Made by a program: the position numbers and the translations under genes. A stretch of DNA of 55,235 nucleotides, the filler included, from Platydemus manokwari (Eukaryota), in assembly GCA_037951405.1 (NCBI GenBank). It is 4 parts of 4 records of this genome, joined end to end, with 100 filler letters (N's around TTAATTAATTAA, not from the genome) between each part and the next. Parts side by side here need not be neighbours in the genome. Positions count along the whole stretch, not along the records: positions 28,794 to 44,469 come from JBBMOY011256985.1; 3 more parts are not named here. One strand, written 5' to 3'. Below the pieces are notes generated by a model, which saw nothing but the letters and a program-made list of their open reading frames with translations, was not told where the DNA came from and made no database searches. Of this stretch, positions 1-44,469 are shown piece after piece. The stretch's first letter is position 1. Every line of letters starts with the position of its first letter.

Positions 1-91
1 TGTCTGATGAACATTTAAATGACTTATTAATGATTTCAACTACTCATTTTGAACCACAATTTTTGTAAACCTATCAAATTTTAAAAAATCA

Positions 92-127
92 ATGTGGTCC
101 TTTGCTGAAAAAGTTTGCAGACCCCTG
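92..127. mobile_element. Terminal fragment of a hAT-Charlie DNA transposon
   Basis: Ends ...AAGTTTGCAGACCCCTG (reverse complement CAGGGGTCTGCAAACTT, a Charlie-type TIR). It is followed by CTCTAGAA, which matches the NTCTAGAN target preference of Charlie elements. The other end is not seen in the window. Confidence 0.6.
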
Positions 128-609
128 CTCTAGAAACAAACATTTTGTGTAATTTAAGGTTATTTTATCTTTCTCATAGATTGAAAAATGCATCAACAAA
201 TCAGATGAATAGATTATATGTAAAATAAATCTTTTTATCAGATTGCTAGATCATTTTTGTCAGAATGTAAATTTGCATAGAATTTAATTTTATATTGAAT
301 TTGATTTGATATAAAATGGTATTCATTTGTTTATATAATTTTATTTGAATACAATTTGAGGTCGTGCCTTTTCAGTTTGTTTTCAATGTGTGGTTTTTAA
401 AATAGTAGCAGCTTTCATGGTGACCGCGCATCTGGATTCGATTGAAAGAAGATCAATGACTGAAAATTATGGGGAAAAAAGAGGAAAATGTTGATACTAT
501 ATAGAGAATATATCAATAAGATATAACGAAAATTAACAAAATGTAGAGAAGATATAAATAGAAGATATATAGAAGCATCGGAGAGTTTTGCTGACATAAA
601 TATGAAGAG

Positions 610-28793: not shown

Positions 28794-28835
28794 TTATGTT
28801 TAAATGATTTGGTAAAACAAAAACTTTAAACAACT

Positions 28836-28867
28836 AAAAAACATGAATAACTTTTGACTCAGCCTAA
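28836..28867 (-). mobile_element. Mariner-type TIR (element end next to gap)
   Basis: Reverse complement reads TA|TTAGGCTGAGTCAAAAGTTATTCATGTTTT, with a TA target and resemblance to the Hsmar1-type TIR TTAGGTTGGTGCAAAAGTAATTGCGGTTTT. A near-identical TIR is at 44396. Confidence 0.75.
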
Positions 28868-29239
28868 TAAATGACAGAAATAAAATTAAAATTCGATAGA
28901 TGAATGAGAAAATGGTTTACGATAAACTGCAAATCAAGATTAGAATATGATGGGAGATAAGTTATTCATAAAGATTGAGATCGCCGATGATATAGCGAAA
29001 TACTAAATAAAAGAATAATGAGATTAACTGTACCAGCGCAACGCTAGAGGATTTTTATTGCAAGAATTATTGCAATGGTCTACATTGGATAGACTGTAAA
29101 GTGATCTTGTGTCGCAACGAAACAAAGCTGCTAAATCGACATGTCCAAATATGTTCGCATCGAAGCGAAATTGAAGCGATATTGCAGAGATCCAAAATAT
29201 GGTAAACCATGCTTGTGCAATTTCTGAAGTGCAAATCAA

Positions 29240-29480
29240 TCATCGGTAATGAGTTTAGAGATGAAAGAATAATCGAACCATCTACAAGTTTGTTCCGTCC
29301 GATGTTTGTAGCTTTACCTAATTAAGTGATTTATTAGAAGTATTGGAGACAAAATGTTCACAAACTTTAAATATTTTCAAAGTGCTTATTTTTTAGGCAT
29401 GTACATTGAATACAAATGCCTAGTTAGTAATTTTTGATAAGCAGACCTTGCAATGTGGAATGAACCCAAGATATTTATTG
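29240..29480 (+). mobile_element. Highly degenerate Gypsy-type RT fragment
   Basis: Translates RDERIIEPSTSLFRPMFV, resembling GIIEPSxSPWxSP, with weak traces of later RT motifs. Confidence 0.35.
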
Positions 29481-30546
29481 TATTTCTTTTTAAAATTAAT
29501 CGCGCAAAGAATTTTTTTATTGAACGAAACCTGATGATAAATACACTCACACGTAAGATTTAATTAATTTTGAGCAGTCAATCTCGATTTCGATGTTATT
29601 AGTTGTTATATATTTTGTGACATCGGTTGTCATAAATAAATCTTGACATGCAAACAATTGTATTGCTTATTTACAGATGTCACATTAAATAGATCGAACA
29701 ACTTCATATAATAACAGCATTTTTTATTAAAAACTGCAACAATTTTGTAAAACTACAAATTACTCAACGTTTTAAGCAAAAATTCTTAGTACAAATTCTC
29801 AAAAGAAATTATCAATGATGCCTCGCTGAAGTTGAACATTAACAAAATATTAATGTTTGCTCCATTATTTAGTTCAACTGCTTATAAACCCACTTATAAC
29901 ATAAACCAACGTCATTACACAAATTCAAAGCTAATTGACAAATGCTTCAAATTAAATAGAATTATAAAATAATTGCTCCAAAATTATGATTGATTTTCGC
30001 TGATATTTGCACGTCAAGTTTGTTGAAGAAATTTATTAAACAATTTTAATTGGTAAATTAAACAGTTTTGATGAAAAATATTCTGATTATTTACAAGAAT
30101 TATTATAACACAAGAATATCTTAGCTCCATTTACAAGAAATACGTATTTAGATTTCCAAGGTCGAATTTTGTTATAAGTATTTAGCATAAATAAACAATA
30201 GGATTATAAATATAATTTTTATTGATAGTTTAAATTTAAATGAATATTCATTATAATACTCACTATATTATTCACTATAAATTATAAATTATGGAATTTA
30301 ATTAATAATTACTTTAATACGTTCAATTAAAGGTTGTACTGTAAATGAACTTTATAAGTATAATCCAGATTCTCATAGACCTACTAAATATATGAAATAA
30401 AATGATTGAGCTTAACATATTGACAATTTGCTTAATATAAGTACTGAACAGGCTTTGGCATACATTCTTGTTGTTGATTGACTAAAGAATACAAGCATAT
30501 ATATGAATCTAAAAATGATAAATTGTATTTCTAAATTTGTATAGCA

Positions 30547-32034
30547 ATGAAATTCAACTTACAAAGAAAAGATGTATTTATTTTTGTCCTATTAGCTCTA
30601 GCGAAATTTTCAATAGGAATTATGTGCAATTTAGTTATTCCTATTTTCCCAACATTGATTGCTACTAATTTTAATGAAAAGAACTTATCAATATCAGATT
30701 TCAATAATTCCGATTTACGAAATTCAAGTTTCAACTATCAGAAACTGTCGATTTTATTTGCCACATCAGCAATAGTCACAATTGTAGTTGGACCACTGAT
30801 TGGGTATATTTGTGGAATAGTGGGATCGCTAAACTTATTGCTGTTTGGAATTAATTTGGAAACAATAACAATATTATTTTACGGACTTAGTAATCAATAC
30901 TATCTCATGATTTTAGGTCGAATTGTCGAAGCTATTACAAGCAGTTCAATTCACATATCCGTGATAACTTTTATGACTTACCAGTATACTGATCATAAAA
31001 TCAGAGGATTTATAACTGGTCTAACTGAGGTTGGTCTATGCATAGGTGGATCGATAGGCCCTGTTTATGCAGGATATGTGTTTCAATATCATGGTAGAAT
31101 TGTAGTATTTCTATCATTCATATCATTGATTATTTTACAAATTATTCTCTTAATTTCTTTAATGTTATATCTTAGATCCAACAAAAGACGAGAATCATTC
31201 AAAAAAAATTCTAAAAAGATGAAAAAATTAAAATCAAATGACAATCGATTAGAAGTATCTTCAGAAAAAATTGGAGAGAAAGATGATGTAAATAGTATTG
31301 GAATGACTGATGAAGTTGTGAAGACTAATATAGGAGAAGAATCGAATATAAGCAAATCTCTCCTTAATAAAGATAATACTGAGAAAATTGATAAACAAGT
31401 AGATACCCTAATAGTGAAGACCAAGCGCAATATACTCTTAGAATTTTTAATCGATCCTTATTTCATACTTACCATTATTTCTTTTCCAGTAATGCTTTTA
31501 AGCCTAATCATGTATTTATCTACCTTACCTCGATACATGAAAGAAAAATTCAATGCTACTGAATCTCAACAAGGACTAATATGGACTCTAAATATGATTG
31601 GATATATTGTAGGATTTTTCTTGGGGAATTTTCTTAACATGAAATTTTCAAATTGGCGTCATGTCATTTTGATGATCCAAATGTATATAGCTGCAGTTGG
31701 ATCTATTTGTGTTGCTCTGATGCCAAATTGGTGGTCGATTTCTTTCCCATTATGTCTAATTGTCACTCAACAATTCATGTTTTCAATTATTTGGATTCCA
31801 GTTTTGTCAACGATTGTTGAGAAAAGACACAACTCGGAATTTGGTATCATGTCGGGAATAACAATGGCTGTGATAGGTATTATTGCTACTTTAGGATCAT
31901 ATTTAGGACCTATTTTATACGGAAAGATCGGGTTCTTTTATTTGAATCTGATTATCTTGATTATGGAACTTGTATATGGACCTCTGTTGTTGTTTGATAA
32001 GCAATTTGTGATAACAAATAAAAATTCAGGTTAA
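30547..32034 (+). CDS. Intronless MFS transporter, divergent SLC18A (VMAT/VAChT)-like, 495 aa
   Basis: About 12 TM segments with a hydrophilic central loop. SLC18-like landmarks: VIPIFP (VVPIIP), LFATSA..GPLIG (LFASKA..NP..G), LIDPYF (L.DPYI), LPRYM (LPIWM), IVEKRHNSEFG (LVDxRHVSVYG) and LGP. Confidence 0.85.
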   Translation: MKFNLQRKDVFIFVLLALAKFSIGIMCNLVIPIFPTLIATNFNEKNLSISDFNNSDLRNSSFNYQKLSILFATSAIVTIVVGPLIGYICGIVGSLNLLLFGINLETITILFYGLSNQYYLMILGRIVEAITSSSIHISVITFMTYQYTDHKIRGFITGLTEVGLCIGGSIGPVYAGYVFQYHGRIVVFLSFISLIILQIILLISLMLYLRSNKRRESFKKNSKKMKKLKSNDNRLEVSSEKIGEKDDVNSIGMTDEVVKTNIGEESNISKSLLNKDNTEKIDKQVDTLIVKTKRNILLEFLIDPYFILTIISFPVMLLSLIMYLSTLPRYMKEKFNATESQQGLIWTLNMIGYIVGFFLGNFLNMKFSNWRHVILMIQMYIAAVGSICVALMPNWWSISFPLCLIVTQQFMFSIIWIPVLSTIVEKRHNSEFGIMSGITMAVIGIIATLGSYLGPILYGKIGFFYLNLIILIMELVYGPLLLFDKQFVITNKNSG

Positions 32035-34225
32035 AAGTTAATATATTTTCGTCACTGAAAGATACACTGCATTTAAATATCATATAATTTGCATTTTTTC
32101 CCGTGTTTTATTTATTACTTAAATAGGTACAATGATCAATTGGAAACCAACAATGATTTGAAAATTGAAAATAAGAATAAGAAAATGCACATAACTCTTA
32201 ACTTGTTACCTCAAATGATAGGGTAAAAATAAAGAGCTCTTATAATATATCAAGTATTTGAAAGAACGAATTAATTTGTTAGTTCAAATGATCTAGTGAA
32301 ATACAAACAATAATTTTATTTGTAGCATTTAAAATGATTAATTAGATAAATATTATTGATTTTATTCTAAAATATATTAAAAGTATTGGCGTTATTAATT
32401 TTCAAAATTCCAATAAATATGTTGATTAAATTTTACAGATTATTAAAATGAAAATATTGTTGAGTGTCAAACAAAACTAATTCAAGATACTTATGAAAGA
32501 GATACTTCAAAAAGTTTGATATACACGGACTCGATGAGTGCACGTGCCAATAACCAATCAGATGCGTCCAAGATACCATTTCATTAATATAATTTTATTA
32601 TCATCGACGCACATCACCAAAAGGCAATAAACACTAAGATGAGCCATTGGTGAACAGACAATGTAGATCTGTAAAAGGAATCAAATTTGGGAACAAATTA
32701 CCAGTCTTTCTTGATCGGTAACCATTATATAACTTACTATTTTGCTATGTCATTCTAATGACCAACCTTTAATAGTTCTTGTTTCTATTTTAATTCTATC
32801 TTTCGGCATCATCTTGAATGCACTTACAATGCAATTATTGATAAATTGATTTTTAAATGTGACTTTGTGATTATAATTACATTTTTGACTATTCGGCGTT
32901 AGTATATATCAAACAACATTTTTATAAGAATAATTTTTTACACAAGTAATTGTAGGATAAATGAAAATCAAATTAATCTAATGATTAATTTCAGAATAAG
33001 ATCTTTCATTAAAGAACGCACGAAACATGGAATATTGATGATCACAACTAAAATTTTAAAATTTCGTCTGTTACCTTTTAAAATTCAGAAATCTTATTAA
33101 TGTCCCGTAAAATGTTATTGTTGAATACAAGGTTTTTCTAAAATAAGATAAAATCAAAAAATATTTGTGAATATTGAAGTTCTAATTTGATAAAATCGTA
33201 TTATACGGTTTCATGATGTTGCTAAAGGCCCACTTCTACTTTTGATTAGGTTTTACCAGCAAAATCATCAACTTTTATACTGGCCTTCGATCTCTATGGA
33301 ATGATAGATTTCCATATGAGTTTGGAAACACTTCTTCATGAACATTATATCGAATAAATGTTCTACGACAATGCTATTGGGTAGTATATAATTGTATATT
33401 CACTTGACGTTATTATTCAGTACATACGTTATCTTACTGGCAAACGATCGATAAAGGTATAAAGAACTAAAAAAGATCAATATCTAAGTAGTAATAAAAT
33501 TTTCTTTATCCAGTTTATGGTAGTGTTAACTGCTGTATAACTTTGATAACCTTATCGAAAATGAAATAGAAGTGCTGAAATATTGAAAATTAAGTGAATT
33601 CAATCCGAGATATTGATGTGTTTAAGTAATAAAGGCGATCAACTAGTTTTATTTGGCTAAAAATATTCCACTGGCACCGGAATCCTTTATATGATGCAAG
33701 CATTGTTGACAACAAAATCTTCAGACTTCATTCCTTCATTACCGGTTTCCAAAATTAAGGACATAATTCCTGCCATAAACAAAATTATATTTCGTCAATA
33801 AAATCGAAATATTTTATTTATTTTAGTCAAAAATGTTTTTATCAATCACATCGCAGTAGATATACAACCAGTAAATTTGTTACAAAGATGATAATTATGG
33901 TCCTATTATTTGTTACTGTGCTCTTCTAATTTCAAATTGCCAAAGAATATATCGATCAATATATCCATCAAATATCAATATATAATAATATGGCAAATTA
34001 AAATAACAATACTTAGAATTTGGAAAGAATTATCCAATAGAATTTGTTCTAACTATAAAACCATAGTAAAAGATTTTAAAACTGGACTCCAAACCGTAAT
34101 ATGCTGGTATTTATTCTTTTTATCTTTGTTTCAATGAGATAAATCTGAGATTTGTTTAAATATTCAAGAAAAGGATACTGATTTTTAAAGCAACAAATTA
34201 TAATGGAAACAACCAACGTTTGTAC

Positions 34226-37200
34226 TGGCAACCATGCCGAAATAAATGCTCTTACGAGAGCCAAACGAGAAGAGAGGTAGAAAAAAATTTGCGAATCTGT
34301 TCCAGAAAACTCAGGAGTTATTGATTAGGGAGCTGTCGTTCTTCGATGCATCAATATAATAAGATCCTGATAAATGGTTCCAGATAATCAAAGATTTCGC
34401 AACATTTAATCAAAAGGAACTATCATTTGCAATTAACATGCTGTTGAGAGATCACGTCTAAGAACGTGGCAAGAAATCAGCAGTTTCAAAGAAGCTCTTT
34501 CAAATGAATATATCTTGAAAAGTGGTTTTTTGAAACTTTCTCACATGCCAAAACAATGTAAGACAAGGTTCAGGATTTCGCAGCTATGCAACAAAGACCA
34601 CATGAAAAATACCGCAGTTTCGAACTTCTGGTAAAGAAGCTGGTTTCGAAGGTGTTTGACAATGAAGACGCTCTTGAAGAAATTCAAGACTATTTATTTT
34701 GTCTAAATAGCAAAGAGTTGAAAATCTTTTACTCTCAACCCTACAATGTCAGACGATAGAAGAAGAGACCTGTCTGTCAATTCGGAAAAGTTTACTCCGA
34801 TGAAGCCCATAAACGGTACCAAAAACATATGCCCAGTCGGTATTTCAAAGTGACCCACGAAAGACTTTTCAGAAGAAGAATTCTTTCAAGAAGCCAGATC
34901 CAATTTTCAATAAAGAGATTTTAGTGTAAAGAAAAATCATCGGACACCAATTAATCGCATTGAATTTCCAAAAAATGCGAGACCAACAAGATCAATGAAA
35001 GCTATTGCCTCTAAATTTTATAACGATTGTAGAGGAAAACCCACACCACATGATGATGTTTGAAATCCAGGAGCTTGTTTTGTTGTGCTGAGCTTGGACA
35101 CAGGAAGTTTGAATATCCACTGCGGAATAAAAGTTTAATATACGGGAAAGAAAGTCAACCGTTCAGAGAATGTCATTTAGCCAGAAAGCCTAGTTATAAT
35201 ATTTCGAAGAAAATTTAATGCCTCCATGACGAAGAAGGTGAAACCAAAAGTCAAAGTAACAAAACTGGAATCAACTTCTTGTGGCAATCTCGTCAGTGAG
35301 GTTGAGTCAATAGACAATAAATCAGTTAGAGAGAATAGAAGTAAAGATGAAAGACGGCAAGAGAAGAAGGAATCATTCACAGATGTTTCAGAAAGCAGAT
35401 GGTAGACACTGGAGTGAAATTGAGTGCAACAGTACATATATTGAAGTGTAATGGAATTCTAGCGAATCGATGACAGTAATGAATGAGGGCAACTGGAGGC
35501 GAATGGGAGAGCCGCAGATTAAAACTTCTGATGTTCGATTGGCTGGCGTATTCTCCAATAGACACAAATCGCGTCTAGGGAAAATAAGGATCTCAATAGT
35601 TTGGAACAACAAAATTCTAGTAAAGGAGATCATTAAAGTAAAAGAAATTTCACCAGGATTTATTGAAGGCGTTGATATTATAAAGACTTGTAAAATATTT
35701 CTTGCAGTGATAGAATCAATTGATGCCAAAGACGTAGGAAAGAAATACATCGATCAAGACAGAATTGAAATGGCACTGAAGAGTATTGCTAATAAGAATG
35801 ATATTTCATTAAAAGGTGTATAAAAGAAAATGACTCAATTTTTATGGCTTCTCGGTTCGATTTAGAACTAACTGATTTGTCAAGCACGAGATCCGAACAA
35901 AAAGCAGTCTATAGATTTAGAAACAAAAATTCAAGAATTGATAGAAAATCTTCTAGAGAGTAGTCTAATAAATTATTTTTTACTGTGCATTAACAAGTTC
36001 TTCGCGAGGCGGTGGGAAGATCCCTCAACTCGACTTTATATTTGTAAGTTGAAATTGTAGATCTATGCCTTTTCACGGTCTCGGCATATTGGAGATTCAT
36101 TGTTTTTCACGAGAGCTAAATTCATTGTTCGTCCCATTGAACATTTTCTTGATTTTAAATTTTTATTTTACTGCACTTCAAAGATTGAGATTGGGCAGGT
36201 ATTGTCATAGTGAATGGTGTTTCATCGTCAATGATATTGCTGTACAGGTTGAGGGTTCGAATGTCATCAGATTCACATTGTATGTGGTCAGGTAGTGAGT
36301 TTGATGTGTATTGGAAGAGTCATCGTCAATATGAGAGTCGTCCAAGTGTCTGTCGGTATTGTTTTTGTGTTCGAGTTGGAAAGACGAGTCACAGATCCAG
36401 TGAATATTTGGGGTATGAGTGAATTGTCCATGAGATCCATTTTCATCGGGCATATGGCGTTTGAATTAAATACAATGAAAAATATGCCAAATTTCTAGTT
36501 AGAGAAAGGGCTTAATATTAAAAAATGTGAGATTGTTTAATTAAAAAATTGTTTAGAAAGAAATTTAATTTAAAAATTTTAAAACATAAACAAGGTTAAA
36601 AAAAAATTCATAAAAAAGGTGAAGAAATAATTTGTGAGTGAGAGCGTGAGTTAAGTGACCGTGAAAGTGTAAATTAGAATGAAGTAGAGTTAGATGTTTA
36701 ATTTAATTTTAAACTTTTGGCAGAGATTTTATGTAGATATTCTGAAAAAAATAAAAGAAGGAAGAAAATGTAAATTTATTTTAAAATTAATTTAAAACAA
36801 TAATTAATGTTATGATAAAGACTGATGTTAGATGTTAAGATTATTAAGAATGAAATATTAAATTTTGGTAACGATGATAGTTAATTATATTGAACTTAAA
36901 GTTTTGGTGGTTTAGTGGGATATTTAATTATAGTTTAGTAATTAATTAGATGAAGATTTATAGTTTAGTTGACAATGGTTAATTAAATATGTGTATGAGG
37001 TGATAATGAGTTATGATAGTTTAGAAAGGTGGTGAGTTTTGATGGAATGATAAGGGTGATTTATGTGATTAAGGATTTGGGCCTATTGTGTTAGAAGGCG
37101 TGTTAATTTAGGTCTTTTGTGTGCAGTAGGCGTCTGTTAAAAGTACTGTAACTATAATTGAAGACAGGAAGTTTATCTATTTAATGATTGATTTTAGTAT

Positions 37201-40200
37201 TTTTTACTCCGATTGATTTTAGTATTTAATCATTATGAGATTCACATCTCGTGTTGTTTGGTGTCTATTGGTGATTGCTATTTGTCTTGTAATGATTTTA
37301 TATTTATCGTAGTTTAAGGAACGGTGTAGATTAAATTTGTGTCCATGTCATAGAATATTTTAGGTAAATGACAAATGTGTGTTTTTTCGAGTTGTTTATG
37401 ATAATTAAGTCGGGTCTGAGCCTAGTGTCAATATCAACTGGTGTCGCATTTATATCGATGTCGATCCCGAAGGACTGTAGATGTTTTTCTATAATTTCCA
37501 GTATCATGAAGTGGCGTGGTATTGGGAGATATTGTCAGAAAAAATGGCAGCGGTATCGGGTTCAGTTTTGCAGCACCTGCATAGCACGGATTTGTTGTAT
37601 TTAACGAAGTAGGGAAAGTAGTTCAGTAGTAGGAGAGTGTTGCGAACCAAGTGTGTAAATATCCAGACTTCGAGAAGAGATGACAACTGTTGAGAAGTTT
37701 CCGGAAATTGTGGTGAGGCGGAGTAACAATAAACCATACGACCTTGTTTTTTGAGGGTCTACCACTGGTTATGGTATGACATTTGAACGGCATCGTGTAA
37801 GATGTCACAAAGTTTATTGGGGTTTTCGATAGAGAAGAAGTAGGTTAAGTCGTTAGCTATGGTCATTTTGATTTTGGTTTCAGTTTTGTGTTGAAAGAAT
37901 TCTATATTGATGTTGTGTTTTCTAAGATTTCGTACGGCAAATTGGGTTTTGGTCCACCAGATAGAGGAGGGTTATTTGAATGAGGGGATATTATCGATAA
38001 TCCATGAAAGTGCTGTGTGTGAGAATTCGAGTCTTTTTCGAACTATAAAAAAATGGGACACAATGAATTCACCGAAGTTGTCATCAAGGCTGGTGAAAAA
38101 TCTAAAGGCACACAGGGCTGGATGGAGACGTGATTTGGAGATGGTTTCGAAGAAAGATAGATAGTCATAATGTGTTTAGACTTTTGAAAAACAAAAGGAA
38201 CAGACCGAGAAATCTTTTTCCAGTACCTTATATCGAAATGTTTATAAACTCGGTGTATGGCACGGCAGTTTTCTCCAAGATAATTTTAGACCAAGTATAT
38301 TATCATGTCGAACTGGAGGAAAATTTTAAGTTGAAAACGATGTTCAACACTAGAACTAGACAATTCTGTTTTAGCAGACTACTTTTTGGATTATGTTTCA
38401 AAATCTAATGAATACAATATTCAAGGATTTGATTTACAAAGGCGTTCTTGTTTATCTGGACGATATTTTAGTGTAGGGAAGAACAATTGAGGAAACCAAT
38501 GAGAAACTCGAAACGCTATTCAGGTTGATTAAATCATTAGGTTTGAAAACCAATCCCGAAAAATGTGCTTTTGCAACCAGAAAACCAAATTTTCTGGGTA
38601 ATACGGTCAGTGTGGAAGGTATAAAATTAACAAGGACAAAGTAAAGAAGATTAAGGAAGCAATAAAACGCGGTTGCATCACTCAGTTGAGGTCGTTCCTA
38701 AGATTATTTAATTTTTTACAGAAGATTTATCAAAGACTACGCATTAATTGCGGCTTCATTATGTGAAACGATGACTGGAAGCGACAAGAAATTGGAGTGG
38801 ACTACGGAGTATGAGCAGAGTTTTACAAATCTTAAGGAACAATTATGGACAGCTCCGATTTTGGCCTTTCCGATTCCAAACAAATAAATGATTTTTGATA
38901 TCGACACTAATTTCGGAGCGATTGACCGCGTTCTAATCCAGGTGAATGATACTGGAAAAGAGAGAACAGTGGCCTTTGGTTCTAGAACTCTAAAAAGTCA
39001 TGAAAAATGTTATTGCGTCATGAGGAAAGAGCTTTTGGCATTGTCTGCTGAGAAAGAAATTTGTGACACGCACATGCATGAAGAAAACTAACAAATAGAT
39101 TAGCCCTAAGTTTCAAACATGGTTTGCAAACTATTCCGGATTCAATTTCGAACTTCAATATCGGAAGAGATAGAATCTTGGAAATGCGGGTGAGCTCTAA
39201 AGGATAGGCGAAGCATATTGTTCACAGTGGTTAACTCAGCACAAAGGTGCTAAAGAAGACAAACCAAAAAGTCGGTTTATTAATGTTGTCGAGCATTCAA
39301 TTGCAAATAATGACCAACTAAAGTAGATTCAACAAAAATAGTGCCATTGGTTCCACTCAAAAATGGTTACAGAAAACAGGAGGGAAATATTTTAACAGTT
39401 TAGAGAAATATAAATTGTTTGAATATATGGTGGTGTATAACGAAAATGGAAAGAAACGAATTGTTGCGCCAGAGGTTCATTCGCAGAAACTAACGAGATA
39501 TTTTCATGAGGAATTGTGCTTTATTGGTAATAAGAAATTGGTTTATTACACTCAATAGATTTACTTTTAGCCAAATTTGTCACGAAGCATCCAACATGAA
39601 GTACGAAATTGTGAAATTTGTGCTAAACTGAAAGTATACACTGGTCGGACTGAAGAGATTATGATTCTAAGGGAGGAGTTTGGTCCACTGGAACATATCG
39701 TTATTCATGTTGCCAATTTTTGAATAAAACAAAATAACTGTTGGCTATTCATTAAGTTACTAAGCTTTGTGCCACTTATTTGACAAGAAGAGATCAGAAT
39801 TTCCAATCCTATCATCAATAATTGGATCTATAGATATGGTGCTCCAAAATCAATGCTCGCTGATCGAGGTAGAGTCTTCAAAGGAAGAGAAATGAAGGAA
39901 TTAGTGATACGTTTTGGAATAAAGCAAGAATTTACCTCCTCATACAAACACCAAGCAAATGGCTTAGCCGAAAGAATGATTAGGAGTGTCCGAAATGTGG
40001 TCGTTACAACGCATTCGTGAAACAGGCTCGGAATAATTTAATACCTCGGATGGAATTTATCATTAATGCAACATATAAGCGTTCAATTCATCATTTTCCT
40101 TTTGAAATATTGTTTTGACGAAGAATTAATATGTATGAGTTACGACTAAATGAATCAAGCCACCTCAACCAAATCATCAAATAAACGGAAAACCAGCTAA

Positions 40201-40440
40201 AATCAGTAGCCATAAACCTAAGGAAATTAGATGCTAAAAAAAAAGGTCGTACGATTTTCGAGATTGGAGAGGAAGTTTTAGTGAGGAAAGAACCACCAAG
40301 ACAAAGAAGAACGGAGATAGTAATGAAGGTCTTCACAGAATATTGAAATTTTTAATCTCCCGTCAAATGTATCTTGACTTCCAAGCACATCCTAAACCTC
40401 GAAGAATTGTGTGGCTGAAAAAGCAGGAAGTATCAAATAT
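34226..40440 (+). mobile_element. Degenerate Ty3/Gypsy LTR retrotransposon (gag-PR-RT-RH-INT), interrupted at ~35975-38130
   Basis: PBS-like TGGCAACC (34226); gag knuckle CFCCAELGHRKFEY (~35075); protease remnant ending IEGVDII; RT FPVPYIE..FSK..YYHV..FGL and YLDD (~38455); RNase H IDTNFGAI..VL.Q, VAFGSRTL and KELLAL; integrase H..CEIC, GAPKSMLADRG and QANGLAERMIR. RT-RH-INT order. Many stops; LTRs not identified. Confidence 0.92.
35975..38130 (-). mobile_element. 5'-truncated R2-group (NeSL/R5/Utopia-like) non-LTR retrotransposon with RLE endonuclease, nested in the Gypsy RT
   Basis: Minus-strand translation with a few stops and frameshifts gives ALCAFRFFTSLD, SIWWTK, KKQG, WIFTHLVRNTLL.LN, the zinc knuckle CRCCKTEPDTA-H (~37580), RHFMIL, and the RLE motif LRPDLIIIN..K..FVI (37420-37370) followed by DKY. 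Confidence 0.85.
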
Positions 40441-40599
40441 AAAAGAAATCGACATCAATTAACTTAGTCAAATAGATGAAGTTTTTCGAACAAAAATATT
40501 AGTGTTGTCTTGCTTACCGGAAGGATTTGGATTAATTGGTATTTTATTCTCCAGTCTAGCTGAGATCGTCCTCTTACAGATATCAACATCGAAAAATAC

Positions 40600-41655
40600 A
40601 ATTTAGACTAGAATTGCCGCACATATCAAAAATAATTCAACATAAAAATTGCAAATCCTGTATGCGGCTGAAACTATCTGATTTTTCAAATTTATTTAAA
40701 CTCTCAACAAATAAATGCTGATAGAAAATTTAAAACTCAGTTCTTCACCTCACCAGTATCAAGTAGCAAGTTAACGACTCAAAAAATAATCCTAAGTAAC
40801 CCTAACTATTCTATTATATCCAACCGGAGAGTGTTTGTGTTATCCAACTCAAGCTATAAAATATTAGCTGGTATACACATAAATAGGGTATTACAGTGAA
40901 TCTTTTAAAGCAATATTCTGAAACTAGAACAGAAATATAAGCTGGAGTCTGAGGGTTGCATTGATTACAATGAATATTTGTTGTTCATATTTAAAGAAAA
41001 GGAAAAACCCACCTCAATAACATTGTTCGACATCGATAATGCATTCCTAAATATGGAGAAAGCTTGCCTTAGCGTTGATTTTGTGGCTATCATTGAGGAT
41101 ATAAACTCTGATGTATAAACATTCTATAAATTCAAGAATACCATTATCCATGAAATTCAGCTCCAGATAAGGATAAAGAAAGAGTTCAGACCATAAATCC
41201 TATTATCGATACTATTACCAGTTCTAACATTAAAGCATTGAGATAGTTTTTGTTCAACAAGAAAATTAAAGTACTTTGACTATGGTGATTACCTCTCTAC
41301 AAATGCATTGGATTTTAATGATTTTAATTTATTTTTGATCGTGCTACAATTATTTCTTTTAAGGAATCTGCATTTATTTTCGTCGGTATCAAGGACACAG
41401 AGATCATCATCAACCAACAATCAATCATGTAACTTCGTTTTGGAGAATTTCATATCTGGGAATGCCAGTTGGATATCAAATATATGAAGCACCGATTGAC
41501 ATTGATATATTATCAAAAAATAAGAAAAATCAACTTGTTACAAATCTAACTTTTGTCCTCCGAACAGGAGCAAAAAGATTTCACAATCAAAATTTCACAA
41601 AAAGTCAAGAAAATGCTATCATTCAAATAATGGTGATGGTTTTTTGACATTTGTT
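40600..41655 (+). mobile_element. Degenerate RT domain of an R2-group (NeSL-like) non-LTR retrotransposon
   Basis: Ordered motif traces: NRRVFVLSNSSYKIL (NWRPI.L.N..YK), EQK, GCIDYN (GC.EHN), LFDIDNAF, FVAIIEDI, VL-YGDYL (YADDL), YLGMPVG, LTFVLRTG and a GGLG-like thumb near 41630-41650. Left boundary approximate. Confidence 0.75.
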
Positions 41656-42239
41656 AGGATTTATAATAATATTGAGGATTTTTAAAAATAAATTTAAAAG
41701 ATTTTATTCTATTTGTTTGAAAAATTGTGAATAAAATATTGGCTTGTGTTGTGACTTTTCAGTTCGTTTTCAGTGGGTGCACTTTATGAAATATAAGTGG
41801 CTTACAAATGCCATAATTTGAAAGCATTGTTACAATGCTTAAAGTGAAGAAATAAAAATTATTTAAAGGAATTAAAATCGAAATAAAAACGTAATTCAGG
41901 CGAATTAAATTAGAGTGCTTTAAGATATCTAATTCTATTGGTTCATCGAAAAATATTATAAATACTAGAGTTATTTGAGATTCAAAACCAAATTGATTGA
42001 AGCTATCAATATGTTAATGGGGTCACCAAAAATAGATTTAGTGATTGAAAACGGAACGACCTTTTAAAGAATTCAATGATCATAAATTTTTAAAAAATTT
42101 AAAATTTAAAGCAAACAGGGATATCATAGATATGCTGAGTGTGATGAAATTCTGCAAAAAGAACGAATTTGCATCTTGGAACCCATGTTCAAGAGCTTTA
42201 ACGATTTGCATGCTTACACAACCATACAAGCATAGCAAT

Positions 42240-42600
42240 CAGCCAATCATAACGAAGTAAGATGGCAAACGACAATTTAAAAAAGGAACATAGCTACACA
42301 ACAACGCACACATACGGATTGACCAATTCCTCTCATGCAAAAACTTAGAAACCCAACAAGAACGTGACACACAATTACACACAGATCGCGAGTATAAAAA
42401 TCGATGTAAAGATGGCCAATTGTCAGTTTCAATCCGAGTTTTGGTTGGTATTTTGTACAGTATAGTTTGTGTGTAGTGTACTGAATAATACATAAGAAAA
42501 TGTAATACTAGCCTGCTACTGTGGAGTCAAAGCTCAGTTAATTAAAGTATAAATACTAAGTAACCGAAATGTCTTGGAGAACTGACATCGTATTTTACCA
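42240..42600 (+). mobile_element. Possible LTR fragment
   Basis: CCAAT boxes, TATAAAA followed by TCAGTT about 25 nt downstream, and a CA end. No partner copy seen. Confidence 0.3.
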
Positions 42601-43374
42601 CTTCTATTTAAGAAGAATATAAAGAGTTAAATTTGTGGTTTTCAAAGTGCGCATCTTGAGAAAATTAGGATTTCATAAAGTTCTTATAACTACAAGTATG
42701 GATTGTCGATTCTGATTGGGTTATTGGCATAAGACAAGCACCAGAAAATAGCGAATTCGCTTGTTGGGTTAATCTTCAACTAGATAATCTCTCTATACTT
42801 TGGAAATTAGACTCGAGAAATTATCAGCATCAACTCTTAACGAATTTCCGATTCACTAAATTCAAGGACATTAGTAAGTACTGATCTATCATAGACTTGT
42901 TAAATAAAATGTGTTTATTAAAAGATATTTTAGAATCTCTCTCTATCCAATGAATAGGTGATTTGAGCGTGATCTAAAGTTGAACTGTGCATGGATCTGT
43001 GTATCTATGAAATAATAAGGGCTTTAATTAGTAGCTATCTTTGTACCTATATGAACTTTGATTTTCTTTCCTAAACAACATTAAGAATAAAAAACGTGAA
43101 TGACTTAAAAACCTTGAAAAATAGTTAAGAGTAAGTTTTTCTCACATTCACCCACGAATTGCAACAGTAGTAAAGAAGCGCCAGGCGCAACTGTTCCACT
43201 GACATTCACCATTATTATTCTATACCCGGTATTGAATACAGAATATGTTGTATTTATGAGAATAAAAATTCTTCTTAGATGATCTTCTTTGTTTTATATT
43301 ATTTCATTGCGAAAAGTTTTTGAGTAAAAAAAATTTATATTTTGAGGTAGTTGTGGTGTGAAAATTTAAAGAGC

Positions 43375-43417
43375 TCAATAGTGTGCCTTGATATATAAAA
43401 ACGATTGGGAACCACGA
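43375..43417. mobile_element. hAT-Charlie terminal remnant
   Basis: GTGTGCCTTG...AAAACGATTGGGAACCAC resembles Charlie ends (...AAAGGTTGGGAACCACTG). Confidence 0.4.
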
Positions 43418-43715
43418 GCTAATTGGTGAGGTCTAAGCTTTTATACTATAAGTCCAGCACTGTGCGGTGGGCAAGTAAAATAAAATAGATAAAATCTGAA
43501 AAATAGCTGAACCTCGTTATAGTAAGACTACTTAATAATCTTTGTAAGAATTAGTAAAAATATTATTAACAGCAGATAAGAATATTTACTGAATGAGGGA
43601 AATCACAGGAAAACGGTTGCATTGAGAGCAAACTGAAACTCTTGATATGTCATTTAAGGATAAAAATGGCCACCGGTTAAGCAGCCATAAAATATGAGGT
43701 AGTGAATAATAATAT

Positions 43716-44265
43716 TGTTGGGTATATTAATCAATAATTTAGATCTGAAAACTGTATTACTAACAATATTACAATTAAAGTCGCAATAGCTACAGCAAAT
43801 ATTTTCACAACTCACAATGGTAAATAACACAAGACGGAATCAGTGCCTGAAAGTCAAAAACAAAATAGAAAGTAATCAAAAGACTGGTTACTAAAAATCA
43901 CCCAAAGGTAAGCTTAACTCGAGAGTTACAAACCAAAAAGACTGCCAGACATTCATGGAACTCAACCTCTTTTATAAACGTATCGAGTGTGTTACGGATC
44001 TTCGTTTTCTATTTGTTGAATCTGTTCGTAGATCAGTCTACTTGAAATTTTCTTTGTATCCTCGGATTATTGGCGAATATTTGAGCTTGCTGCTATTTGT
44101 AGATATGTGCTTGTCGGTTTTTAGCTTCTGAATATGGATTAATATTAGAAGAAATCTGATTGGCTGACGGCACAGGTGCTTATCGCATCTGTGTGCATCA
44201 ACCCGTTTTAGGGTTATTTCTTTGATTTTTTTAACCAATTTGATCGATTTGTGATCTACCCAGCC
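43716..44265. mobile_element. Solo LTR, family A, copy 2
   Basis: Starts TGTTGGGT, ends ACCCAGC, and is colinear over ~550 bp with 1962-2516. Confidence 0.7.
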
Positions 44266-44395
44266 AAGTTGAGAGGCGTACATTTTATCATATTGACCTC
44301 CAAACAACATTGATTGGCAAAATGATTAGCTAAATAAAGAAGAACACTTTAGAAGCTTATGATTTGTCATGAGAAATTTTCGATAAGCAGACATA

Positions 44396-44469
44396 CCAGG
44401 TTGAGTCAAAAGTTATTCATGTTTTTATGCAGGTATTTTATTAACACAAATTGTTATAACGCTGAACAT
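44396..44469 (+). mobile_element. Mariner-type TIR running into gap
   Basis: TA|CCAGGTTGAGTCAAAAGTTATTCATGTTTTT, the same family as 28836-28867. Confidence 0.75.

Follow-up and report, generated by a model that had tools for sequence, protein, structure and literature searches.

Whether a neuron is aminergic or cholinergic is defined by its SLC18A transporters, whose mechanism is believed to require a fixed complement of buried charges. What, then, is to be made of a family member that has none of those charges: a relic, a protein that has given up coupled transport, or a carrier that has moved its coupling site and changed its cargo? The question is raised by a gene of the flatworm Platydemus manokwari (GenBank assembly GCA_037951405.1), found in a window of 55,235 nucleotides, the whole stretch of joined parts that was analysed. 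A complete single-exon coding sequence for an SLC18A-like 12-TM MFS_1 transporter, 495 amino acids followed by TAA, lies at 30547..32034 (+), in a 15.7-kb piece whose next longest open reading frame encodes 120 amino acids. The first-pass annotation had called the 495-codon frame intact and the ORF list agrees; at the local base composition that many open codons would arise by chance with P ~2e-19. The start Met is common to Smed slc18a-3 of Schmidtea in an end-to-end alignment, and this is an intact gene of an AT-rich flatworm. The sole sequencing run that contains the locus is genomic (~12x, 0 differing letters) and may be the source data; searches of sequencing runs for RNA containing the locus found none. 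The gene is followed, 2.5 kb downstream, by a decayed retroelement.

The SLC18-like identity first proposed is borne out by sequence, fold and tree, and is more exactly SLC18A-like. The protein matches Pfam MFS_1 at 2.6e-35, and its best PDB sequence matches are VMAT2, VMAT1 and VAChT (1e-15 to ~3e-20), with NorA at 5e-3 and no SLC18B chain among them. The AF2 model (mean pLDDT 86.7) has 12 TM helices, and its VIA-align scores are Z 50.5 for VAChT (rmsd 2.3 Å over 377 residues), 49 for VMAT1 and 46-47 for VMAT2, the next fold families and other MFS proteins reaching at most 38; Foldseek gives target TM-scores of 0.87-0.91 for the best VAChT, VMAT1 and VMAT2 chains, and an ESM Atlas feature search points to a vesicular amine transporter or MFS protein. 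The structural glycines and prolines of SLC18A are retained, as is the TM5 glycine/proline antiporter motif (G158, G163, G167, G168, G171, P172 and G176, one Gly having given way to A175). There is an equivalent of VMAT2 Y341, and aromatics stand at the VMAT2 gate columns F135, W318 and F334 (F71, Y330 and W346, mapped via ungapped HMMER offsets). The lumenal loop between TM1 and TM2, typically large and glycosylated in SLC18A, has here only about 22 residues (42-63); N46, N53 and N59 each begin an N-x-S/T sequon in it, three in all.

In an IQ-TREE phylogeny of metazoan SLC18A, rooted by a fungal and holozoan/protist outgroup and with SLC18B sequences left out, the gene falls inside the metazoan SLC18A clade (support 100/99). 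Might it nevertheless be some other DHA1-type MFS protein, drawn to SLC18 by chance similarity? Identity to VMAT and VAChT is only ~20% and NCBIfam returns weak Tet/DHA matches, but with sequence and structural scores so far above those of NorA and of other MFS folds, and with nesting in that tree, such an origin is very improbable.

Within SLC18A the gene joins Smed slc18a-3, -5 and -1 and a Macrostomum homolog in a ten-member clade (100/100) whose labelled members are all flatworms, five of the ten carrying no organism label. That clade lies in turn in a VAChT-side clade (100/100), a placement that involves long branches and unusual composition, the Platydemus sequence itself being flagged. 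Its sister is Smed slc18a-3 (99/95), with terminal branches of 0.68 for Platydemus and 0.38 for the Schmidtea gene. Joining the clade to the VMAT side is 35.7 log-likelihood units worse and is rejected (p-AU 0.011), the group having been named after the tree was seen. The gene is outside the true-VAChT clade (98/96), and the columns diagnostic of VAChT versus VMAT are mixed. Of the 'VAChT-derived branch' once suggested, the VAChT-side position relative to the split from VMAT stands, but derivation from VAChT is not supported. As identities, true VMAT was set aside on the tree and the AU test, and true VAChT on the position outside its clade together with S413, M440, L324, H136 and S74 in the columns of D398, D425, E309, D193 and K131. 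The phylogeny places the gene in a divergent SLC18A subfamily, on the VAChT side and outside the true VAChTs, as the ortholog or co-ortholog of Smed slc18a-3. The flatworm subfamily is monophyletic, has lost D426 and has an acid at the VMAT2 Q192 column wherever D33 is lost.

The nearest relatives are Smed slc18a-3 (~50% identity, end to end), slc18a-5 (39%) and then slc18a-1. In word-index protein searches neither the protein alone nor a 10-sequence profile recovered anything but Smed slc18a-3; generic hydrophobic words filled the candidate lists, and the searches are uninformative on taxonomic range. A search of the available literature for earlier descriptions of divergent flatworm SLC18 found none, an absence that is not proof, and the gene can hardly be regarded as unknown, since a 2015 study listed its Schmidtea counterpart, along with four similar paralogs, as divergent planarian slc18a genes and mapped them by in situ hybridisation (Vu et al. 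2015, PMC4500094). Of the eight slc18a genes that Schmidtea has, five are in the divergent set.

Is the gene a relic? A retrocopy had been one suggestion, and reading of the flanks turned up none of its hallmarks there, neither a poly(A) tract nor an evident target-site duplication. A retrocopy or pseudogene that is evolving neutrally and is open by chance would account for the single-exon coding region and would fit the nearby retroelement and the lack of RNA evidence in the runs searched; it is nonetheless highly improbable given the chance expectation for 495 open codons, the flanks, the retained MFS structural residues and an alignment that shares the start and runs end to end at 50% identity with the product of a cloned cDNA from another species. 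Constraint is also unevenly spread. The two TM halves share 51.5% and 57.3% identity with Smed slc18a-3, about twice the 28.8% of the central loop, synonymous sites against this sole ortholog being saturated at ~50% identity. The loop, cytoplasmic between TM6 and TM7 (residues 206-295; 31162..31431, +), is of low complexity and poorly conserved, with pLDDT below 50 at residues 245-284. Among 53 strongly conserved SLC18A columns the gene keeps 27, in a clade that ranges from 21 to 39. As to the missing introns, the Macrostomum relative has one only, in its central loop, so a scarcity of introns may be usual in the clade; no genomic contig of Smed slc18a-3 turned up in an exact-sequence look-up. 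These comparisons indicate a functional, selectively maintained gene.

The loss of the charges had been read from a manual alignment to human VMAT2, and a HMMER alignment to the same protein reproduces every substitution listed. D33/N34 in TM1 become I23/G24 (30613..30618, +), K138 in TM2 becomes S74 (30766..30768, +), E312 in TM7 becomes L324 (31516..31518, +), D399 in TM10, the equivalent of VAChT D398, becomes S413 (31783..31785, +) and D426 in TM11, VAChT D425, becomes M440 (31864..31866, +). All five membrane-embedded charges of SLC18A are missing (0/5). The VMAT2 cavity is lined by six titratable residues, D33, E312, D399, D426, K138 and R189 (PMC10959523), among which R189 alone is kept, as R125.

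Everything here depends on register, which is identical in the pairwise, 64-sequence and 117-sequence alignments and in the structural superposition. It is anchored by landmarks whose spacing is preserved: TM1 has P32/P35, TM2 the LFA block and TM7 the L-P pair, P418 follows the D399 column by five residues, and G433 precedes the D426 column by seven. When the AF2 model is superposed on VMAT2 its ends are offset by +10 (N terminus) and -14 (C terminus), as in the sequence register, and the canonical acids are not restored. Among the 54 relatives outside the clade in the 64-sequence alignment, the D33 column is Asp in 51, the K138 column Lys in 50, the E312 column Glu in 46, the D399 column Asp in 40 (with Glu in seven more) and the D426 column Asp in 36; with the expected charges filling the columns in most of them, these are the columns where the canonical residues align.

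The losses differ in how widely they are shared. The D426-column acid is gone in all ten clade members. The D399 column is Glu or Asp in 7/9 clade relatives and Ser in Platydemus, and with Lys or Arg at the K138 column in 9/9 the loss at S74 is specific to the Platydemus gene; both serines, S74 and S413, are encoded by TCA, from which no Lys, Glu or Asp codon can be reached in fewer than two nucleotide changes. The motif A arginine has become I91 and Q142 has become Thr, both being kept by the closest relatives. On the C-domain side the N388 column, the partner of E312 in VMAT2, is also Leu (L402), and the pocket columns N305, E312, N388 and D399 read L, L, L and S, so that N305 and N388, polar partners of the lost residues, are hydrophobic too.

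Charges have also been gained, and those first noticed, the new glutamates and a TM1 lysine, are real: K20, E105, E128 and E161. K20 (AAA, 30604..30606, +), three residues before the D33 column, is Lys in Platydemus, Smed slc18a-3 and slc18a-5, its column being Leu in 36 of the 54 other SLC18A relatives. The TM4 motif B segment R125..E128 (30919..30930, +) brings together the R189 column, Arg in 64/64 aligned sequences, and the Q192 column, here Glu. That last column is Glu or Asp in all eight clade members without D33 and Gln or Asn in both members with it, a swap that is a single event on the tree and not a repeated correlation, and it is acidic in none of the 54 relatives outside the clade. 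In the VMAT2 structure D33 contacts Q192 (PMC10959523). The loss of D33 and the acid at the Q192 column look like one carboxylate that has moved. H136 (30952..30954, +) is at the TM4 column of VMAT2 S200 and VAChT D193, which is Asp in 12/12 VAChT-clade sequences and His in Platydemus alone within its own clade. In the topology of the AF2 model E105, E128, E161 and E474 lie near the middle of TM3, TM4, TM5 and TM12 respectively, E474 aligning with VMAT2 D460. Helix spacing and VMAT2 homology suggest that K20, E128, H136, E105, E161 and E474 may face the cavity.

The best explanation as a whole, to which we give a probability of roughly 55%, is a constrained flatworm SLC18A-subfamily gene with relocated coupling and a non-classical cargo. 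On this proposal the Platydemus protein would still be an alternating-access, probably proton-coupled, vesicular transporter of neurons, with proton handling relocated to a rebuilt N-domain network in which E128 would replace the lost TM1 aspartate and would be partnered by R125, by the subfamily-specific K20 and possibly by H136. Rewired proton coupling, raised at the outset as one way out, is plausible in that E128 occupies the column that contacts D33 and is acidic exactly in the clade members without D33. A working analogue may be the E. coli MdfA variant E26T/D34M/A150E, whose binding and protonation sites are described as revamped and which was studied for drug/H+ antiport, with coupling reported (PMC7054563): like the flatworm protein it is a DHA1-type MFS antiporter with TM1 acids removed and a Glu placed on another N-domain helix, although it is an engineered bacterial drug exporter outside SLC18 and has its new Glu at A150 instead of in motif B of TM4.

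An inclination to see loss rather than relocation is understandable. Coupled MFS carriers that lose a protonatable residue tend to become uniporters, and a fold kept for service as a uniporter or facilitator, or as a non-transporting sensor, chaperone or regulatory subunit, would fit the disappearance of four cavity acids and K138. It would fit too that charges kept at the K138 and D399 columns by most or all clade relatives, and the motif A Arg, are gone here on a branch longer than the ortholog's; with these extra losses, Q142 among them, and that branch, partial relaxation or loss of coupling may have occurred in the Platydemus lineage. Against it stand a mid-membrane E128 beside the invariant R125 conserved across an eight-member subclade, the antiporter-type TM5 motif, the gate-column aromatics and the clear constraint on the TM halves, and we regard outright loss as unlikely, though worth keeping in view.

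What of the cargo if the coupling site has indeed been relocated? The cavity would pass from net negative to neutral or positive and its C-domain half would be largely hydrophobic, so that canonical binding of acetylcholine or of a classical cationic monoamine would be unlikely, and the cargo would more probably be a small molecule that is neutral, zwitterionic, anionic or hydrophobic. It may be countered that a cationic amine or acetylcholine-like transmitter is still loaded by way of the new acids E105, E128, E161 and E474. Four glutamates near the middle of their helices, one of them aligned with D460, might compose a new site, as a rebuilt acid site proved workable in MdfA (PMC7054563), and in situ hybridisation shows Smed slc18a-3 expression in the brain, the photoreceptors and discrete mesenchymal cells (PMC4500094, supplementary file 1). 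The difficulty is that true VMAT is represented in planarians by separate genes, slc18a-4 and -7, and true VAChT by slc18a-6 (PMC4500094), and that the pocket columns have turned largely hydrophobic. In addition, E105, E161 and E474 are Q, G and G even in Smed slc18a-3. In MFS folds TM3 and TM12 generally lie at the periphery, and altogether cationic cargo seems rather doubtful.

Relocated coupling with a non-classical cargo can be carried a speculative step further, to a lineage-specific SLC18A-derived set in flatworm neurons and photoreceptors that loads a non-amine cargo, be it neutral, zwitterionic or anionic, through a coupling site moved from TM1 to TM4. If so, flatworms would have an undescribed vesicular pathway for a transmitter or modulator, and the Platydemus gene would be its most stripped-down member, with R125, E128 and K20 as the minimal charges. 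The wider interest is that a constrained, probably neuronal branch appears to do without all five canonical charges while its scaffold is kept, a natural experiment in how MFS antiporters relocate a coupling site, and a way in to what may be an unknown vesicular cargo of planarians, animals in which RNAi, in situ hybridisation and phototaxis-type behaviour tests are routine. Were the cargo to prove ordinary or the protein inert, the gene would still show which family residues are dispensable.

Other SLC18-type transporters are orphan or non-classical in their cargo, and are likened here by description: Drosophila portabella is an orphan SLC18-like transporter, and SLC18B1/VPAT is reported to have a polyamine substrate. 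The closest comparison is with Smed slc18a-3 (an AKN-series GenBank entry; UniProt A0A0H3YK86), with which Platydemus shares K20, R125 and E128 and the loss of D33, E312 and D426; the Schmidtea protein keeps the Lys of K138, the Gln of Q142, the motif A Arg and a Glu at the D399 column, where Platydemus has S, T, I and S, and Platydemus adds H136, E105, E161 and E474. Mammalian VAChT is intronless, and few or no coding-region introns are among the likenesses to VAChT (SLC18A3), along with the best structural match and the same side of the SLC18A tree. The differences are the short lumenal loop and the five absent VAChT residues, among them D398, on which vesamicol binding and substrate recognition depend (PMC11369146). 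To VMAT1 and VMAT2 the likeness is in the 12-TM fold (Z 46-49), the R189-equivalent Arg, the Y341 equivalent and the gate-column aromatics; unlike them the Platydemus protein has lost five of the six titratable residues of the cavity, and tree and AU test place it elsewhere.

The open reading frame at 30547..32034 (+), 495 codons closed by TAA, encodes an intact, constrained protein of SLC18A fold from which the canonical charges are gone. HMMER alignment to human VMAT2, whose numbering is used for alignment columns, pairs D33 with I23, N34 with G24, K138 with S74, E312 with L324, D399 with S413 and D426 with M440; the substitutions at D33/N34, K138, E312, D399 and D426 had been read from a manual alignment in the first-pass annotation, and the two agree exactly. 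The new residues listed there, a TM1 lysine and glutamates in the N-terminal half, are likewise all present (K20, E105, E128 and E161). Spacing is unchanged at the register anchors P32/P35, the LFA block, the L-P pair after TM7, P418 and G433. Across the 54 relatives that do not belong to the gene's clade, a divergent SLC18A subfamily, the D33 column has D in 51, K138 has K in 50, E312 has E in 46, D399 has D or E in 47 and D426 has D in 36. S74 and S413 are each encoded by TCA, from which no Lys, Glu or Asp codon can be reached in fewer than two base changes, so both are old substitutions rather than single-base slips. At the level of sequence, loss of the full canonical charge set is confirmed. 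Six titratable residues are reported to line the VMAT2 cavity, D33, E312, D399, D426, K138 and R189 (PMC10959523), and of these the gene, unlike VMAT2, retains the arginine alone (R189 equivalent). With E128 and K20 counted, and assuming that both face the cavity, its nominal charge would go from −2 to about +1.

Does such a protein belong to SLC18 at all? It matches Pfam MFS_1 (2.6e-35), and phmmer against all PDB chains returns VMAT2, VMAT1 and VAChT only (E 3e-20 to 4e-15), followed by NorA at 5e-3. An AlphaFold2 model with a 64-sequence alignment as input (mean pLDDT 86.7) shows 12 TM helices, with the central loop disordered. Foldseek with this model ranks VMAT1, VMAT2 and VAChT at the top, and VIA-align gives Z 50.5 for VAChT (rmsd 2.3 Å, 377 residues), 49 for VMAT1 and 46–47 for VMAT2, the next families, SV2A, NorA and SotB, reaching at most 38. 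Structural alignment of model residues 8..487 with VMAT2 18..473 has end offsets of +10 and −14, those of the sequence alignment; the register is the same and the acidic residues are not restored. In an IQ-TREE phylogeny (LG+C20+F+G4 PMSF; 50 sequences, 451 columns), whose seven outgroup sequences had clustered in the first tree with MFS proteins of fungi and holozoans, the gene falls inside SLC18A, and that it lies outside SLC18 altogether is very improbable.

The gene is sister to Schmidtea mediterranea slc18a-3 (99/95), the pair is joined by slc18a-5 (100/100), and all three are in a 10-member clade (100/100) that includes a Macrostomum protein and slc18a-1. This clade is nested in a 26-member clade (100/100) with the true VAChT clade (98/96, label Spadella VAChT), and the VMAT side (labels Haliotis VMAT-like and bird VMAT1) is outside. 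Forcing the flatworm clade onto the VMAT side lowers the log-likelihood by 35.7 units (p-AU 0.011), the group for the AU test having been picked after the first tree was seen; the tree has long branches, and the composition of the query is flagged. The notion of a VAChT-derived branch is thus borne out as regards the side of the tree but not as regards derivation, the gene being outside the VAChT clade and the clade's states at 25 VAChT/VMAT-separating columns being mixed (49 VAChT-like, 54 VMAT-like). Placement on the VAChT side, outside true VAChT, is what the sequences make supportable.

The frame, previously described as intact, is upheld: at local base composition a stop is expected about every 12 codons, and the probability of 495 open codons is ~2e-19. 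It is the sole long frame of its AT-rich piece (28794..44469, G+C 25–37%), the runner-up in all frames being 120 aa. In the sole sequencing run containing it (genomic DNA, perhaps the assembly's source) the locus is a single contig at ~12x with no differing letters. A retrocopy had been suggested. The coding region is one exon; flanks read by eye have no poly(A) tract 3' of the gene and no flanking duplication, and the ...tatag immediately 5' of the ATG might act as splice acceptor to a non-coding exon further upstream. Since the Macrostomum relative has one intron (~860 bp, within the central loop) and other clade members are uninterrupted frames on contigs of 1.6–1.8 kb, a coding region with few introns or none may be usual in this clade. 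Mammalian VAChT likewise has few or no introns. A retrocopy origin, though conceivable, is not needed to account for the structure. Compared with slc18a-3, the gene product is 51.5% identical over TM1-6 and 57.3% over TM7-12, against 28.8% for the central loop. Of 53 columns with 80% conservation or more elsewhere in SLC18A, it retains 27 (clade range 21–39; slc18a-3 33). Scaffold residues G86, G101, R125, P172, G176, F188, D303, P304, G343, P418, R427, G433 and P479 are all present. The pattern argues for purifying selection on the gene rather than a decaying copy, its longer terminal branch (0.68 versus 0.38 for slc18a-3) perhaps reflecting somewhat accelerated evolution; a neutral retrocopy or pseudogene is extremely unlikely.

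Within the clade, D33 survives in the two basal members, one from Macrostomum, whose Q192 column holds Gln or Asn; the remaining eight, this gene included, have lost D33, and all eight have Glu or Asp at the Q192 column, where none of the 54 outside relatives is acidic. Six Tet-like or other DHA-type matches in a wider, distant and less certain alignment also have Asp or Glu there. In VMAT2, D33 is central to a polar network, directly contacting N34, K138, S196 and Q192 (PMC10959523), and so the carboxylate seems, judging by the alignment, to have shifted from TM1 to a facing TM4 position one helical turn from invariant R125, as a single event on the tree with no repeated correlation. None of the ten members has kept D426, and nine have lost E312. 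The gene's nine clade relatives all have Lys or Arg at K138, and seven are acidic at D399; within the clade, Ser at both is found in this gene only. At Q142 it has Thr, and the motif A arginine is replaced by Ile. K20 is shared with slc18a-3 and slc18a-5. The pattern of charge loss is genuine and coherent and can be tested in planarians. The paralogous members P0006 and P0011, which pair as sisters and both have Asp at Q192 and Glu at D399, come from a single run, SRR21676451, so the subfamily is multi-copy in at least one further organism.

What might such a protein do? Cargo and coupling we infer entirely. Since the TM5 antiporter-type glycine/proline motif is retained and aromatics are kept at the columns of the VMAT2 gate residues F135, W318 and F334 (ungapped offsets of the VMAT2 alignment), the product would still be an alternating-access antiporter. 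The TM4 Arg-x-x-Glu and the TM1 lysine are conserved; protonation would be at E128, adjoining R125, and no classical cationic amine would be bound canonically. The DHA1 antiporter MdfA, with its binding and protonation sites rebuilt in variant E26T/D34M/A150E, offers a precedent for such a rebuilt site (PMC7054563). C-domain polar partners are absent (L, L, L and S at the N305, E312, N388 and D399 columns). Loss of coupling, leaving a facilitator or non-transporting protein, is conceivable, if unlikely. Gains specific to the gene are H136 (column of VAChT D193, VMAT2 S200), E105, E161 and E474 (column of VMAT2 D460). A cationic cargo held by new glutamates is somewhat less likely again, E105, E161 and E474 being unconserved even in slc18a-3.

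When 1.84 billion cluster representatives were scanned in full, only three proteins fell below 1e-30: slc18a-3 (50% identity over an alignment that starts at Met1 and reaches the C terminus), slc18a-5 (39%) and the product of a transcript-sized contig. Further matches included a hypothetical protein of Macrostomum lignano, Smed slc18a-1 and four sequences without organism label. Judged by its best matches and composition, the source is most likely a flatworm distinct from S. mediterranea. The subfamily is already deposited, catalogued and expression-mapped in Schmidtea. Of the eight slc18a genes in Vu et al. 2015 (supplementary file 1), two are clear VMATs (slc18a-4 and -7, BLAST E 2e-160 and 2e-156), one is a clear VAChT (slc18a-6, 2e-149) and five are divergent (slc18a-1, -2, -3, -5 and -8, 1e-12 to 1e-19). 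In situ hybridisation places slc18a-1 and slc18a-3 in brain and photoreceptors, slc18a-3 also in discrete mesenchymal cells, and slc18a-5 in brain and pharynx (PMC4500094). Neither functional work on the subfamily nor discussion of its missing charges was found in the literature searched, within which the complete charge loss, the matched acid at Q192 and this gene's extra K138- and D399-column losses appear undescribed. The coding sequence of the Macrostomum member P0004 (L006:3001-5408, NIVC01000236.1) is divided between two exons near residue 226, and its gene is probably duplicated in the M. lignano genome, since there is also an entry for an almost identical protein, P0151.

Around the gene, a 12-bp tandem repeat (unit AATATTCACTAT, 3.2 copies, 30243-30280) lies ~270 bp upstream of the start codon. 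An antisense frame of 113 aa (31089-31430, −) crosses the low-complexity central-loop coding region and is most likely a by-product of that segment's biased composition. At 32728-33021, ~700 bp 3' of the stop codon, summed contig depth rises from ~12 to 35–44, many short contigs end, and one contig omits 59 bases (32770 to 32830), the likely sign of a short interspersed repeat. A decayed Ty3/gypsy-like retroelement occupies 34500-40350 (+) as short ORF fragments with many stops between, among them matches to RT_RNaseH (38888..39091, +, E 7e-09) and integrase core (39853..40020, +, E 2e-03), at a G+C (31–38%) above that of the gene region. Inside this region, ~600 bp at 36500-37100 consist of A, T and G, nearly C-free on the + strand; GC skew reaches 0.55 over 36294-37293, and a 24-bp tandem repeat is present in two copies at 36585-36632.
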